From: Salpingoeca rosetta
Lineage: Eukaryota; Protista; Choanoflagellata
Direction: 5' to 3'
NCBI GenBank assembly: GCA_033442325.1
Contig: JAWQFM010000016.1
Location: 677,318-689,520 of the forward strand
Length of the DNA stretch: 12,203 nt
A model generated the notes under the pieces. That model was not told where the DNA came from, ran no database searches, and worked only from the letters and a program-made list of their open reading frames with translations. This document shows positions 3,733 to 8,408 of this stretch, piece by piece (within the stretch, counting starts at the first letter, position 1; each line of letters starts with the position of its first letter). A program made the position numbers and the translations under genes.

Positions 3733-5573
3733 TCAACTTGGCGTCGCCATGGAACGATCTTGCACAGTTTTGAGATTGTCTGTGGTCTTGCGCGTCTGGG
3801 GGTGTTTTGGCCCAAGCTTGGTCGTGAAGATGTTCAGGGCGCGTGTAATGTGGTCCAAGGCACTACAGTGGTCACCCAGGTGCGAGAAGGCGATGCCCAT
3901 GTTTTCCAGCGTCTTGGCGGTGCTCGTGTGGTCTGGTCCCAGCACACGCTGTTCAATGTCCAGTGCCGTGGTGAGGAAGGCAAGCGCGCGGCTGGAGTCG
4001 CCCAGTGCATCGTACATGTTTCCCATGTTGCTGTAGGTCTGTGCAGCACTTGGGTGTGTGTCCAGGTCGTTGTGTCGGTAGACCTCCAACGCCTGCTCGT
4101 ACCACTTGATTGCCTCCCTCGCATCATCTCGCTCAGCATGCACTTTGCCAATGTTGTTGTACAAGGTCCCAAGTATTATGTGTGTGCGACCAAGAGCAGC
4201 AAGCACAATGTCCAGTGCTCTCATGTACGCCTCAAGGGCCTGGTCCAACTGGCCACTGTTGTCGTAGGCAAGGCCAAGGTTACTGAGGGTCATGGCGGTT
4301 GTTGGATGGCGCTCGCCGAGGGAGACAGTGTAGATGTCGACAGCTTTCTGAAACAGCTCAATCGCTTGCGCATACTCATCCGTCTCCAGGTACAGCGCCC
4401 CGATGTTCGTGTACGAGGTAGCTGTCTGCGGGTGTCCTTCCCCGAGCACTTTGCGGCGGATTGCCAGCGTGCGCTCGTGGTATTCAAGCGCACGGGCGTA
4501 ATCGCCCATGTGCTGGAATGTGCTGCCGAGGTTGTTTAGAGCTGCGGCCGCGAGGAGGGGCTGTGCAGCATGCTCCTCGCTGCCATCGGCCAAGAAGATC
4601 TCCAGGGCTTGCTGGTAGCAGTCGATGGCTTTGGCGTAGTCGCCCTTGGCACGAAACGCCTCGCCAAGGTTGTTGTACGTCTTGCCGGTGTTGTGGTGCA
4701 TGCGCCCGTTGGTGGCAGTGAAGATGTCCAGTGCCTTGTGGTAGTATTCAAGCGCCTTGTCGTTGTTGCCCTGGCTATCGTGTGCGTTGGCAATGTTGTT
4801 GTATGCCTTGCCCACGTTCTCGTGCTCGTGACCCAGCTGCTCGATAGAACATGCAAGGTTTTTGTTGTACAGGGCAATGGCCTTGCCCCATTCGCCAAAC
4901 TCATCCATGACGTTGCCAACCTGCCGGCACGTGAGTGCGTACTCGCTGCTGTGGGTGTCGCCTTTCTGCTCCATCTCCACCACAAACGACTCTGCCATGT
5001 CCAGGCACCACGCTCGCATCTGGTCCTTCACCGCCTTGTTGAGCTGTTGGAACCCAACGCTCTCCTCAATCGCCTTGAAGATCATCTCCCTGTCCGCTGG
5101 CTCGTGTGCTTGTGCATGTTCTGCCCGCACATCCACCAGCATGTTGGTGATAGCGCTTGCGTCAGTGGTGACTGCGCGCCTCAGTTCTTGGCGTTGGTGC
5201 TGTGGCAGTTTGATCTCCAGCAAGACATCATCCCCTCGGCTGATGGCGCAGAAGATTTCCCACAAGCACCAAGCGCGCGTCAACGGCACAGGGTCACTCC
5301 AAGGTGTCAGCACTAGCAGCACTTGTCCAATCGACGCAATCGCTTCCTTAAACGTCGTCCCGATCCTGCACAGGACGTTTGTGTGTGCGTGCGTGAATGT
5401 GTGTGTGTGTGTGTGAGTGTGTGTGTGAGTGAGTGTGGGTATGTGTTGTGTGGTACGGGTGTGATGAGCATTACGGAAGATTCTGTAGTACCATGGAGAA
5501 GGACGTATAACCCACAGGCACAAAGACACACACACACAGACAGGTACACACGCACACACCCACACACAGACAG

Positions 5574-5621
<48 letters not shown>

Positions 5622-6074
5622 GCACACACACACACACTCTCTGTCTCACACGCACACGTACTGCTCTTGCGTCAGGCTGGTCCTGTGGGATGGATGTTGG
5701 TTGATGCAAAACAGATCAAACCAAAAGAACGTCTCTTTCTTGGTTCCATCATCTTCATTCTTGTGTTTCTCGTCCTCCGCCTCGGCATACTCCAGCATGG
5801 TAGTGAGCACGTCAACAATCTTGTACTGCCACGCATGTGAGACAAACACGGTGGCTGGCCTAACCTCTTCTGGGTTGGTGCTTCGCAGCAGATCCACAAC
5901 GCTGCACTGGGTCTCGCGTGTTCGGTGCATGACAGGCTTGATGCACGCGTCTGCTGTCGTCACGTGATCAAAGCCGCCCGGATAATAATCGCCCAGCTGT
6001 GACATGAACCGCCTGACCGCGGCGACCGACACTCCATCCATGCACATGGGAGTGGTTGTCGGCGTTGTCGCCAT
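3733..6074 (-). CDS. TIR/HET-like N-terminal domain plus nine kinesin-light-chain-type (42-aa) TPR repeats, ~681 aa, 2 exons
   Basis: Exon 1 6074-5662 (ATG 6074; donor CA|GTACGT), intron 5661-5366, exon 2 5365-3733 (acceptor tgtgcag|G; stop TGA). The junction reads ...[28 protein letters not shown]-terminal motifs are [20 protein letters not shown] and [21 protein letters not shown]-terminal repeats (~4940-3790) have consensus A..Y.NLG......G.Y..AL..Y..AL.I....LG..HP.T. Confidence 0.9.
5380..5657. repeat. Opposed (TG)n (5380-5435) and (CA)n (5525-5657) tracts in the TPR-gene intron
   Basis: Direct reading. Confidence 0.9.
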
Positions 6075-6221
6075 GATTGCGGCCAAACAGCACAAGATTA
6101 TTGACGAAGTTGCCAATCAATTGTCGACAAAGCAAACAACCTCATTTTTCACCAAACACCTTCTTGCAACAACAACATGCATCGTCAAACTCAAACGGCG
6201 CTGACGCCACGTCGCGCTTTG
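6075..6221. promoter_or_regulatory. Putative compact bidirectional promoter/5'UTR region
   Basis: 147 bp between divergent start codons (6074 on -, 6222 on +). A/C-rich; contains the perfect 10-bp palindrome TTGTCGACAA (6121-6130) and TGACGCCACGTC (6202-6213). Function is inferred from position only. Confidence 0.55.
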
Positions 6222-8408
6222 ATGGCTGTGTGTCTTTCTGCCATCCTACACGTTCTTTTGCTCTTGTGTTCAGCCGCCTCAACGTCCTCAACCCCACTTC
6301 AGCCACTCAAAACGGTGTGGTTCAACAGCAACAACAACACCACCAATATCAACCACAACACCAACAAGAACAACAACAAAGTCAACTACAACAACGCCGG
6401 CGGAGTCACGGCCCGACATCAGAACCCCAGCATCTTCGCACCGGTGCGATGCAAGAACCCAATTCCACTGGCATCCATGTTTAAAGGGGGCGTGGACCTG
6501 ACTGCGGTCGAGCTAAACGCGCTCCCTGAAGCCAGCATTCGAGCCGACATATTGGACTGGACATGCTCCCAAGGCAACACATACAATGACTATGACGTCC
6601 CTGACCAAATCGTAGGCCTTCGCCCCATTCCTTCTTCTGAATGCTCCATCGCGTCTTGGTCCGAGTCATTCCTGTTCAAGGCGTTTGAACACCTCTCCCT
6701 CGACTTCTCCGAGAATTACTTCTTCGGCCTGCTCTCCACTTCCAACACCTTTTCGGAATCTATGTCTGCCATGGTTTCAAGCAACGCCCATGTCGGTGTG
6801 GCCGCCTGCAGCGTGACAACGTTTGAGGTTATCCTCGCACCAGCTTGGATGCTGACGCCCGGCGAGAACCTGGTCAGGGCCATTCAGCACTTTGTTGGCG
6901 CAAATAGCACCATTCGTCCGTACAGGCATCAGCCCGACCACCTTATGCGACGCCAGCAAGAGGGGCGACGACAGCAAAGGGGAAGGCACGCGCCCACTCC
7001 CCAGGATGCAGCGGGCACGCGGTGTGTCCCATTTTCTGCGGACACGGTGAACAACTACAACCAGCTTATTAACATGTTTGGCACTGGCTTTCTCTCGAAC
7101 GGCACGGTGGGAGGCGTGGCACAGTACTTCTTCGCGTCAGAGAACATTGTGACAGACTTCATGGCCGAGGGCGACATAGCGGCGTCGGCCAAGGCCACGC
7201 TATTCAACCTCGTTTCAGCGGCCGGGGGTGCTTCTGGGCACATGGACGTCAACGCGCATTTCAATGAAACATTGGCATTCAGCTTTTCGCGCGCTTTTGG
7301 CGGTGATGTGTCCCCATTTGGAAAGCAGCAGCAGTGGCAGACCTGGGAGAAGAGCGTGTTTGACCACCCCAGCGTGGTGCAAGTGCAGACGCAGAACCTC
7401 TCCAGCCTAGTGCTGCAGTGGCACGAGGACTGCGGGCAACAACTTGCACTCGCAGAGCAGAACTACAACCTGCGCGCCTTCCTGGGTTCCCAGGTCACGC
7501 AGTTGCTGCAGCTGATCTCCAAGTACCTGACGTCCCAGCAGTGGCCCACGTGTGAGTTTGGGCCAAACTCCACGCATTGCCTGCCACACAATCTTGTTAA
7601 CCAGAGCAGCGCACTCCAGAGCAACATCAAGCATGTGCTCAGCAGCAAGCCCGTGACGCCACTCGGTACCGCGTTCCTCATCGCTGCAGAGGTGATTCGC
7701 CTGGTGAAGCAGGTCCCATATCCAGCACCGAAACGTACCCATTCACAGTGGAAGTCCCAGCACTCGGGCGCCATCTCCAACGCAGCGTTTTGCGGCTTGG
7801 CACAGGCGCAGGTTGGCTTTGACACGTCCGTTGGCAACCAGGGCATCTCAATCGCCCCAGCAACGTGGGGAGCAAGCGGTGGCTACACGCGGTGGAACTA
7901 CAACTCAGGCAGCAACTATGGCTTCGGCGCCACCAACTGCATTACGTACACGAGCGCACAGGACATGGCTGTGGGCGACAGCGACTATAACGTCACGGTG
8001 ATTGACACTCACAGCGCCAGCACGCTGCAGCTTGGCGCCTACTGGCTCTGTGTTCCGGCCACGTTTCAATCTGGGTTCGATTCCATCGTCGGAGATGCCG
8101 ACCTGTCCGTCACGGTGGATGGCAACGGCGTGTGGACGTACCAGCAGCATGGCCACAAGCCTGACATGTCCACTGTTATCTGCGCCAAGCACTCGATGCC
8201 GAACGTGCCAGAAAATGTGGTTCAATACACGAGCGTGCACGACGGGCAGGTCGTCGACAAGCACTTTGTGTGCTGGCTTGGCGGGTTGCATTATGGTCAC
8301 AACTCGAACATTGGCAACCAATTCGCCGCCATCCAGCAGAATAAGGACGGCACGTGGACCTACACCAACACTCAGCATGAGCCAGCCACCATTACTTGCG
8401 TTGGCTGA
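6222..8408 (+). CDS. Secreted MACPF/perforin-like pore-forming protein with a three-repeat beta-rich C-terminal domain, ~728 aa
   Basis: Uninterrupted ORF (an in-frame upstream ATG also exists at 6177). ATG 6222 begins a signal-peptide-like segment MAVCLSAILHVLLLLCSAAST. MACPF landmarks occur in order: FKGGVDL, YDVPDQI, signature YNQLINMFGTGFLSNGTVGG (F/Y-G-T-H-F-x6-GG with H>G, 7077-7115), FGGD and WQTWEKSVFDHPSVVQVQTQNLSSL. Confidence 0.88.
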   Translation: MAVCLSAILHVLLLLCSAASTSSTPLQPLKTVWFNSNNNTTNINHNTNKNNNKVNYNNAGGVTARHQNPSIFAPVRCKNPIPLASMFKGGVDLTAVELNALPEASIRADILDWTCSQGNTYNDYDVPDQIVGLRPIPSSECSIASWSESFLFKAFEHLSLDFSENYFFGLLSTSNTFSESMSAMVSSNAHVGVAACSVTTFEVILAPAWMLTPGENLVRAIQHFVGANSTIRPYRHQPDHLMRRQQEGRRQQRGRHAPTPQDAAGTRCVPFSADTVNNYNQLINMFGTGFLSNGTVGGVAQYFFASENIVTDFMAEGDIAASAKATLFNLVSAAGGASGHMDVNAHFNETLAFSFSRAFGGDVSPFGKQQQWQTWEKSVFDHPSVVQVQTQNLSSLVLQWHEDCGQQLALAEQNYNLRAFLGSQVTQLLQLISKYLTSQQWPTCEFGPNSTHCLPHNLVNQSSALQSNIKHVLSSKPVTPLGTAFLIAAEVIRLVKQVPYPAPKRTHSQWKSQHSGAISNAAFCGLAQAQVGFDTSVGNQGISIAPATWGASGGYTRWNYNSGSNYGFGATNCITYTSAQDMAVGDSDYNVTVIDTHSASTLQLGAYWLCVPATFQSGFDSIVGDADLSVTVDGNGVWTYQQHGHKPDMSTVICAKHSMPNVPENVVQYTSVHDGQVVDKHFVCWLGGLHYGHNSNIGNQFAAIQQNKDGTWTYTNTQHEPATITCVG

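Follow-up and report, generated by a model that had tools for sequence, protein, structure and literature searches.

Fungal HET proteins (PF06985), which include the HET-NACHT-WD/TPR proteins, place the HET domain at the N-terminus, ahead of superstructure-forming repeats, and the domain is marked by three blocks, YxALSYxWG, WIDxLCIxQ and RGWTLQE. HET has undergone large lineage-specific expansions and bears a remote similarity to TIR (PMC4986451, PMC10197012), and a HET homolog from the choanoflagellate Salpingoeca rosetta, gi 514691135, which is not demonstrably a member of the family described below, was cited by Dyrka et al. The MACPF pore-formers are a separate group, represented by Plu-MACPF (2qp2), perforin, MPEG1 and the MACPFs of Bacteroidota, and many MACPFs combine an N-terminal signal peptide with a C-terminal accessory domain. 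A third point of comparison is provided by immune genes that work as partners, namely the plant NLR sensor/helper pairs (RRS1/RPS4, RGA4/RGA5) and the fungal two-gene NLR-effector or gasdermin-protease clusters, which are divergent about a short shared promoter, with one partner carrying a TIR-like domain and repeats. The two partners share a compartment, and their linkage is conserved across paralogs or species.

Here, we describe two head-to-head neighbours of S. rosetta, PTSG_06251 (gene A, minus strand) and PTSG_06252 (gene B, plus strand), which lie in a window (the whole stretch of DNA that was analysed) of 12,203 nucleotides and which an earlier note had read as a co-regulated immune or predation cassette set between housekeeping genes. 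Like the NLR-type pairs, they diverge from what is likely a short shared promoter, and PTSG_06251 joins a TIR-like domain to repeats; unlike those pairs, their products belong to separate compartments, and among ~65 paralogs and 2 MACPF loci there is just this one pairing. The cassette reading is unsupported by paralog linkage, by expression or by the frequency expected by chance, and we consider that these are probably two independently functioning genes, placed divergently by chance in a compact genome. If true, a real sensor/pore-former module would bear on the pre-multicellular layout of animal innate immunity, that is, of TIR signalling and perforin-type effectors; as the module reading is unsupported, interest in the two genes as a pair is modest.

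Layout and transcription of the gene pair

Translation, the splice model and RNA all place the two genes where the earlier note had put them (Table 1). Its single intron over 4.7 kb also holds, the RNA over PTSG_06252 being without a splice joint and the splice model of gene A having one intron. The spacer needs correction, since the 147 bp first given is measured only from the second Met (6222) of the MACPF frame, the first ATGs being separated by 102 bp.

Table 1. Features of the PTSG_06251/PTSG_06252 pair, in positions of the window
Feature	Position	Strand	Remarks
Gene A (PTSG_06251) exon 1	5662..6074	-	Start codon at 6074; first half of N-terminal domain
Gene A (PTSG_06251) intron	5366..5661	-	GT..AG, 296 nt, (CA)n/(GT)n-rich
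Gene A (PTSG_06251) exon 2	3733..5365	-	C-terminal half of N-terminal domain, then TPRs; stop codon 3733-3735
ATG-to-ATG spacer, 102 bp	6075..6176		Both 5' UTRs inside
Gene B (PTSG_06252)	6177..8408	+	Intronless ORF, 743 aa

Stranded RNA-seq reveals divergent transcription of both genes in three of three runs, with the reads of gene A stopping at 6082 and the transcript of PTSG_06252 starting near 6160, which leaves a gap of ~77 bp (6083-6159) between the two transcript ends. As the transcription start sites (TSSs) are only this far apart, the gap is likely a shared bidirectional promoter region, and some correlation in transcription is therefore possible from the promoter alone. Within the intron of gene A, RNA depth is zero over 5367-5563, a figure for which reads within the repeat were skipped.

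The downstream flank encodes a GH47+PA (EDEM-like) protein of 854 aa, its gene extending across 9.5 kb or more and being intron-rich, in agreement with the EDEM-type neighbour proposed earlier. The upstream flank, a putative GTF3C1 gene in the earlier note, encodes 1637 aa and gave no Pfam match. That both genes of the pair are intron-poor beside this intron-rich EDEM-like neighbour is an observation contrary to an arrangement by chance.

The N-terminal domain and TPR array of PTSG_06251

The splice model of gene A yields a protein of 681 aa, the same sequence as the S. rosetta database entry P0004 (‘mbre TPR repeat protein’), which consists of an N-terminal domain of ~250 aa followed by ~8 TPR_12/TPR_10 units (Pfam TPR_12, E 6e-109). 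It has no signal peptide and is cytosolic, as had been noted from the sequence. Its relatives are numerous: the S. rosetta genome has at least 61 matches to exon 1 and 129 half-domain matches, the latter equivalent to ~65 loci, and a profile of the N-terminal domain is matched by 9,507 clusters (50% identity). The closest paralogs are 66-68% identical to gene A, most paralogs are split at the place of its intron (domain-profile positions ~125-129), and no feature distinguishes PTSG_06251 from them. Gene A belongs to a family of very large size, found mostly in protists, whose members join an N-terminal alpha/beta domain (~250 aa) to a TPR_12 array, and the N-terminal domain of these ‘mbre TPR repeat’ proteins is in turn a very large eukaryotic family with a predicted TIR-like fold and without a Pfam model, which, with ~65 S. 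rosetta loci and 9,507 clusters, merits proper definition.

Three conserved blocks follow one another along the domain, namely VFVSHAW, FWFDLFxNNQ and a third that contains E174, all of them invariant or nearly so, with the first two encoded in exon 1 and the E174 block in exon 2. Across an alignment of 27 N-terminal domains (A1), F77, S79, H80, A81 and W82 are invariant and W118 and D120 near-invariant; E174, within the helix that follows the third core strand, is also invariant. In the predicted structure the blocks fall on a strand (76-80), a second strand (116-119) and a helix (169-180). To judge from the HET motifs and from the description in PMC4986451, the three blocks would correspond to those of fungal HET proteins in order and in secondary-structure element; both domains lie N-terminally, ahead of superstructure-forming repeats, and the gene A family shares with HET lineage-specific expansion and, by its predicted fold, a remote similarity to TIR. 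The two differ in that the gene A domain is longer than HET (~250 aa), since residues 13-70 form an additional N-terminal sub-domain and further helices follow at the C-terminus, and that, unlike in the HET-NACHT proteins, no NACHT or NB-ARC module separates the TPRs of gene A from its N-terminal domain.

The AlphaFold model of the N-terminal domain is confident (pLDDT 86.5, pTM 0.87), and its best structural matches lie in the TIR group, made up of SARM1, MyD88, plant TNL TIRs and bacterial ThsB together with nucleoside 2-deoxyribosyltransferase and SEFIR. Aligned with VIA-align over residues ~72-265, the model matches MyD88 (Z 6.2), SARM1 (6.0), IL-1RAcPb (5.8) and RPP1 (5.8), as well as nucleoside deoxyribosyltransferases (6.1), ThsB (5.6) and SEFIR (5.2), and most of the top 25 matches are to TIR, ThsB, SEFIR or nucleoside deoxyribosyltransferase chains (Z 5.0-6.4, rmsd ~4 A, 110-136 residues), all of which stay under the Z of 8 below which a match is not treated as secure. 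Foldseek returned no significant match for the domain, every E-value exceeding 0.1. Unlike TIR domains, gene A also lacks a match at the level of sequence, neither the TIR models of Pfam (PF01582 and PF13676) nor any TIR chain in a profile search of PDB sequences being matched by the N-terminal domain. For HET (PF06985), neither P0004:1-270 nor a single one of the 27 domains in A1 had a Pfam match at E<=10, HET does not appear when the commonest families are tallied across 68 relatives (E<=0.01), and a six-frame search of the genome gave 0 matches, the controls in the same search also being without a match.

The label ‘TIR/HET-like’ given to this domain may serve as a description of its modelled fold (Z 5-6.4) and of its three blocks, and fails as a family assignment, there being no Pfam match to HET or TIR: the domain is predicted to be TIR-like in fold and appears HET-like in its blocks, a resemblance and not a membership. 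Judged from the topology of the model, E174 would lie roughly where TIR NADases have their catalytic Glu. If TIR/HET-repeat proteins are a guide, the TPR array is probably a sensor that binds a ligand or partner, and as such it would control the oligomerisation or the enzymatic activity of the N-terminal domain.

PTSG_06252 as a diverged MACPF protein

PTSG_06252 matches the Pfam MACPF model (PF01823), as known MACPF pore-formers do, scoring 41.6 bits where the cut-off is 21.5 (residues 283-414, E 2e-10), and a six-frame genome search with the MACPF model found the same place at 43.6 bits. The protein opens with a signal-peptide-like N-terminus, which is followed by an Asn-rich low-complexity linker, the MACPF domain and a Cys/Gly/Trp-rich C-terminal domain of ~220 aa, an order that recalls the signal peptide and accessory domain of many MACPFs. 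Its signature, FGTGFLSNGTVGG, aligns with WGSHFLSGVVMGG of Plu-MACPF 2qp2 (profile match, E 0.0018) in the shared form (Y/W/F)-G-T-x-F-x6-G-G; against the consensus (Y/W)-G-(T/S)-H-(F/Y)-x6-G-G, the first position is Phe. Unlike known MACPFs, PTSG_06252 is highly diverged, with Gly in place of the signature His and a C-terminal domain that matches no recognised family.

Among 5.8 billion proteins, PTSG_06252 has only two homologs, both environmental and on contigs of 1.6-2 kb. One of these, P0002, shares 46% identity with PTSG_06252 between residue 92, at about which conservation begins, and the C-terminus; it keeps the signature as FGTGRIANGTVGG and has a signal peptide of its own, and relative to it PTSG_06252 contains a 37-aa Arg/Gln-rich insertion. 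The language-model neighbours of PTSG_06252 are MACPF clusters, bacterial ones (Bacteroidota) included, and its AlphaFold model, built from a 3-sequence alignment, has a mean pLDDT of 38.5 and is not usable for a fold search.

Transcript contigs from 2011 are collinear with the genome over PTSG_06252 (6160-8423), with no splice joint in the frame, and this, together with the Pfam score above cut-off, bears out the earlier view of a genuine MACPF gene. At NCBI the gene is probably modelled incorrectly: the signal peptide is missing and 61 codons represented in RNA are cut out, which hides a predicted secreted perforin-like protein of S. rosetta that is enriched in attached cells. Signal peptides in both PTSG_06252 and P0002 likewise uphold the prediction of secretion. 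From its sequence, PTSG_06252 is a lineage-restricted MACPF protein that is predicted to be secreted, and it is presumably a putative pore-former that would act outside the cell, against prey, competitors or pathogens.

Linkage, expression and origin of the pair

The S. rosetta genome (55 Mb) has only two MACPF loci, PTSG_06252 and C5:1369888-1375134, and the genome-wide family map places no member of the gene A family near the second. The full PTSG_06252 protein matched nothing else in the genome, and hence no paralog of gene A has a MACPF-related neighbour at any of the ~65 family loci. The linkage between MACPF genes and TPR paralogs that the cassette reading had predicted is thus absent, both at the C5 locus and across the TPR family. 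Similarity to the paralogs in DNA is confined to the coding part of gene A and ends before the spacer, so the MACPF gene was never in a duplication unit. A close divergent neighbour is common in the family, with several of the 29 paralog loci checked having a divergent ORF of at least 262 aa that starts within 500 nt; none of these ORFs is related to MACPF and, save in recent segmental duplicates, they have no relation to one another. Given 11,629 genes (PMC4054682), adjacency by chance amounts to 65/11,629 per side, or ~1.1% per gene and ~2% over both MACPF loci, without correction for post-hoc selection, and the adjacency is roughly what random expectation would give. A prior chance of only 1-2% is, taken by itself, contrary to the chance reading.

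The main alternative is a co-regulated module for defence or predation, in which a cytosolic TIR-fold/TPR sensor would sense infection, damage or prey and a secreted MACPF executor would be expressed from the same bidirectional promoter, coupling being transcriptional or indirect. We regard this as unlikely. The head-to-head layout with TSSs ~77 bp apart, the intron poverty of both genes and the precedents from immunity and cell death for both domain classes (PMC4986451, PMC10197012) speak for it, as does read depth, both genes having reads in each of the three RNA-seq runs, with a maximum in X22 and a minimum in X23. This pattern is not peculiar to the pair, as both flanks are also highest in X22 and three of the four genes, gene A and PTSG_06252 among them, are lowest in X23; with a rank order largely common to the flanks, the runs give no sign of pair-specific control. 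In published data, PTSG_06252 is ~3-fold higher in attached (thecate) cells (log2FC 1.7-1.9, P<=3e-4; Fairclough 2013) and hence depends on cell type in its expression, and PTSG_06251 is not among the genes in the accessible part of the differential-expression lists. Neither source gives backing to a co-regulation specific to the pair, and the evidence for or against correlated expression is weak. Also against a module are the lack of linkage at the other MACPF locus and at any paralog locus, a gene A that nothing sets apart from its paralogs, and the difference in compartment that follows from signal peptides on PTSG_06252 and P0002 and none on gene A. Since S. rosetta is genetically tractable, both genes are open to knockout.

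In its most specific form, which we think decidedly improbable, the pair would be, in this close relative of animals, a minimal co-regulated ‘sense and lyse’ unit for prey handling or defence, a cytosolic NOD-less TIR-fold/TPR sensor and a lineage-specific secreted perforin-like effector expressed from one ~80-bp bidirectional promoter; separately, and with more probability, the N-terminal domain may constitute a very large unnamed TIR/HET branch (more than 9,500 clusters) that provides protist repeat proteins with a modular head for signalling or NAD consumption.

Very improbable is a recent joint lineage-specific insertion of functionally uncoupled genes, by horizontal transfer or retroposition, which would explain their intron poverty and draws on the intronless PTSG_06252 with its two known, environmental homologs, its Bacteroidota MACPF clusters among the nearest feature-space neighbours and bacterial Plu-MACPF as its sole PDB sequence match, but a match from another domain of life is not a sign of gene transfer, the contig of P0002 looks like a eukaryotic mRNA and encodes a signal peptide, the GC of the pair (0.52-0.59) is the same as that of the flanks, and gene A, which keeps an intron position conserved in its family, has diverged (66-68% identity to its closest paralogs) within a eukaryotic family that is old and dispersed, and hence did not arrive by co-transfer.

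For two independent genes brought together by chance, one further contrary observation is that both gene classes serve immunity or cell death elsewhere.

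Layout and transcription of the divergent pair

At C16:677318-689520 of the source assembly (55.4 Mb, 68 contigs), translation and stranded RNA-seq both confirm that the TPR-repeat gene PTSG_06251 (gene A) and the MACPF gene PTSG_06252 (gene B) lie next to each other and diverge, at the coordinates in the table. The spliced product of gene A equals P0004, the 681-aa database entry for PTSG_06251, which is named 'mbre TPR repeat protein'. The spacer of 147 bp proposed in the earlier note is obtained if the second Met of gene B (6222) is taken, but the first ATGs of the two genes are only 102 bp apart. 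The annotated neighbours of the pair are, upstream, a plus-strand gene of 1637 aa without a Pfam match and, downstream, a GH47+PA (EDEM-like) gene. As to whether the upstream gene is GTF3C1, as proposed, Pfam searches of the window ORFs gave no match, and ORF 1591-3123, itself probably a spurious frame, had no atlas match either. In the papers searched we found no main-text mention of PTSG_06251 or PTSG_06252, and none linking S. rosetta with MACPF.

Coordinates of the two genes in the window
Feature	Position	Strand	Remarks
Gene A exon 1	6074-5662	minus	ATG at 6074; from translation
Gene A intron	5661-5366	minus	GT..AG, 296 nt, full of (CA)n
Gene A exon 2	5365-3733	minus	from translation
Gene B (PTSG_06252)	6177-8408	plus	single open frame, 743 aa

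The interval 3200-9100 was covered with three stranded RNA-seq runs from 2026 (X21, X22 and X23), together with contigs from a single run of 2011. Read orientation flips between the two genes, as divergent transcription predicts. RNA molecules of gene A end at 6082 and coverage of the MACPF gene, like the first contig of 2011, starts near 6160, so that the transcription start regions are only about 77 bp apart. Coverage from the 2011 run is confined to 6160-8423 and collinear with the genome, and the raw reads show no splice joints in the MACPF gene; the expressed MACPF mRNA is thus intronless and includes both the ATG at 6177 and a hydrophobic, signal-like segment. Depth is zero across 5367-5563, in agreement with the intron of gene A, although repeat reads were skipped there. 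Long (GT)n/(CA)n microsatellites occupy 8540-8720, just 3' of the MACPF gene, and 5375-5662, inside that intron, and both were excluded from read counting as repeats. Poly(A) loose ends show that the plus-strand gene upstream has its 3' end at 3392, and weak coverage of gene A extends to roughly 3400-3600, which leaves almost no gap between the two convergent genes.

At 6347-6361, in an AAC/Asn-rich tract that follows the signal peptide of the MACPF protein, the reads of all three 2026 runs differ from the reference. Those matching up to 6346 go on with other letters, CAACAGCAAC..., and in those matching from 6362 onward the match follows a stretch of 51 nt or more that differs from the reference and ends in ...CACAGGAGCAG. 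It seems that about 15 nt of the low-complexity linker are replaced by a longer stretch, which has no in-frame stop over the 30 nt read. The contig of 2011 agrees exactly with the reference here, and the difference could be one of strain or allele, or an assembly collapse.

The N-terminal domain of gene A and its family

The earlier reading of gene A as a TIR/HET-like-TPR protein holds for its repeats and, by resemblance, for its head. Exon 2 encodes about eight TPR_12/TPR_10 units, and residues ~13-262 form a conserved domain for which Pfam gives no match even at E=10, HET and TIR included. Across 27 relatives, F77, S79, H80, A81, W82, P163 and R168-A-W-C-L-W-E174 are invariant, and W118 and D120 nearly so. 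An AlphaFold model built from their alignment is confident (pLDDT 86.5, pTM 0.87). A Foldseek search of this model against the PDB returned nothing at E<=0.001. An exhaustive structural comparison matched residues ~72-265 to MyD88 (Z 6.2), nucleoside 2-deoxyribosyltransferases (6.1), SARM1 (6.0), IL-1RAcPb and RPP1 (both 5.8), ThsB (5.6) and SEFIR (5.2), all under the tool's secure level. Because the top ranks consistently fall in one fold family despite these low values, a TIR-like fold is a reasonable reading of the model.

The resemblance to HET is one of arrangement. Three sequence blocks sit on strand 76-80, strand 116-119 and the helix after strand 152-156, which matches the HET/TIR similarity of three blocks, the last at helix alpha-C, described by Dyrka et al. 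(PMC4986451). HET homologs have been reported in choanoflagellates, stramenopiles, haptophytes and green algae (PMC4986451), the same distribution as that of the structural neighbours of the gene A head, which come from Oomycota, Haptophyta and Chlorophyta and are mostly fused to TPR_10/12. Since the domain has no match to the HET model of Pfam, 'HET-like' denotes resemblance rather than membership. Among named clusters, a language-model search of the head returned only a weak HNOB-fusion cluster (0.75), with neither HET nor TIR among them. By analogy with the families it resembles, the TPR array would control oligomerisation or an NAD-related activity of the head.

The family to which this head belongs is very large: among clusters formed at 50% identity, its profile matches 9,507 with E<=1e-3, of which 2,073 reach E<=1e-30. 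TPR_12 is present in 61 of the 68 relatives sampled, and elsewhere among protists DUF285 repeats, methyltransferases or HNOB domains are joined to this head, a variety of partners that fits a modular signalling or effector head. S. rosetta itself has ~65 loci (at least 61 exon-1 matches; 129 half-domain matches), most of them split at one position of the head-domain profile, ~125-129, so that the single intron of gene A is a family feature. The shared position suggests that the family has grown through duplication of DNA and not through retroposition. This conserved intron has been lost in a few copies, such as those at C21:1152501 and C5:523715 (contig and position).

In a subfamily of eight loci (L011, L013, L015, L016, L018, L019, L024 and L027, on contigs C33, C24, C4, C29, C30, C2, C33 and C20), nucleotide identity is 84-90% across the greater part, or the whole, of the 3.4-kb stretches compared, and much of the 1.5 kb that precedes the start is included. 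The copies are either recent dispersed segmental duplicates or units of a repeat that extends beyond the gene. Another paralog, at C4:331162 (68% identity, among the closest to gene A), lies head-to-head, at about 300 nt, with a gene (L004:1-1194, minus strand, on contig C4 of the assembly) for a signal-peptide protein with DUF6923 repeats, unrelated to MACPF.

A diverged MACPF protein

The assignment of gene B to the MACPF family is borne out by a Pfam match of 41.6 bits (cut-off 21.5), by protein-language-model neighbours that are MACPF clusters, and by a three-homolog profile that matches PDB entry 2qp2, Photorhabdus Plu-MACPF, at E 0.0018, with FGTGFLxNGTVGG aligned to WGSHFLSGVVMGG. The protein is highly diverged. 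Word searches of 5.8 billion proteins, with the single sequence and with a profile, returned only the proteins P0001-P0003 and thus two homologs, at 45-46% identity, on environmental contigs of 1.6-2 kb, and a scan of JGI metagenome contigs confirmed no homolog locus. Structure prediction for residues 92-743 from the three-sequence alignment gave a mean pLDDT of 38.5, too low for a fold search, and this low confidence covers the C-terminal domain of ~220 aa and the MACPF core alike. As the family resemblance suggests, the protein would form pores outside the cell.

NCBI annotates PTSG_06252 as a 579-aa 'MACPF domain-containing protein' that starts at Met101, has residues 234-294 spliced out and lacks a signal peptide. 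This model is not supported by the collinear RNA from ~6160, nor by the homolog P0002, which aligns on either side of a shorter gap of 37 residues and has its own signal peptide. Since RNA contigs and reads begin near 6160 and run collinearly through the spliced-out region, the 743-aa intronless ORF is the better model.

Apart from gene B, the genome has a single MACPF locus, an open frame of 2223 aa on contig C5 with two MACPF matches. These are separate (44 and 36 bits; loci L032 and L034, C5:1369888-1375134, minus strand), which suggests that the locus encodes a giant double-MACPF protein.

Linkage, chance and expression

The earlier observation of the pair is correct and its domain reading mostly correct. 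The proposal that the pair is a sensor/executor cassette is not supported: paralogs show no linkage, and the adjacency is roughly what random expectation gives. We consider it probable that two independently acting genes, whose products are predicted to reside in different compartments, are adjacent by coincidence and share a compact bidirectional promoter.

A real co-regulated module is unlikely. The adjacency itself is real, but linkage does not recur in paralogs, either at the C5 MACPF locus, near which there are no gene A family members, or at the ~65 family loci. The full MACPF protein finds no other match in the rest of the genome, and hence none of the paralogs lies beside a relative of MACPF. 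Nucleotide similarity of this locus to its paralogs is limited to the coding sequence of gene A and ends before the spacer. Several of the 29 paralog loci examined have a divergent ORF of at least 262 aa starting within 500 nt, and these divergent neighbours are unrelated to MACPF. With 11,629 genes in S. rosetta (PMC4054682), the chance of a family member as immediate neighbour is about 1.1% per gene, or ~2% for two MACPF loci before allowing for other 'immune-looking' pairings that a reader would also flag. [quoted passage not shown] Insertion of both genes together without any coupling is more improbable still.

Mean RNA-seq depth over the pair and its flanks
Region	X21	X22	X23
Gene A	6.8	11.7	4.9
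MACPF gene	6.4	9.4	1.7
Upstream gene, 3' end	11.5	10.7	5.3
EDEM-like gene, 5' end	~3	~5	~2

Depth is lowest in X23 in all four regions and highest in X22 in three of them; as the flanks broadly track the pair, its concordance is not pair-specific. In the data of Fairclough et al. (2013), PTSG_06252 is higher in attached cells than in colonies (log2 fold change 1.71, P 3e-4) and swimmers (1.89, P 4.5e-5). PTSG_06251 does not occur in the parts of that study's differential-expression lists that were covered, which speaks only weakly for an absence of coupling between the genes. The FPKM values listed there for PTSG_06252 are 42, 25 and 39 in three attached samples, 12 in swimmers, 11, 23 and 17 in three samples of rosette colonies, and 3.6 in chains.
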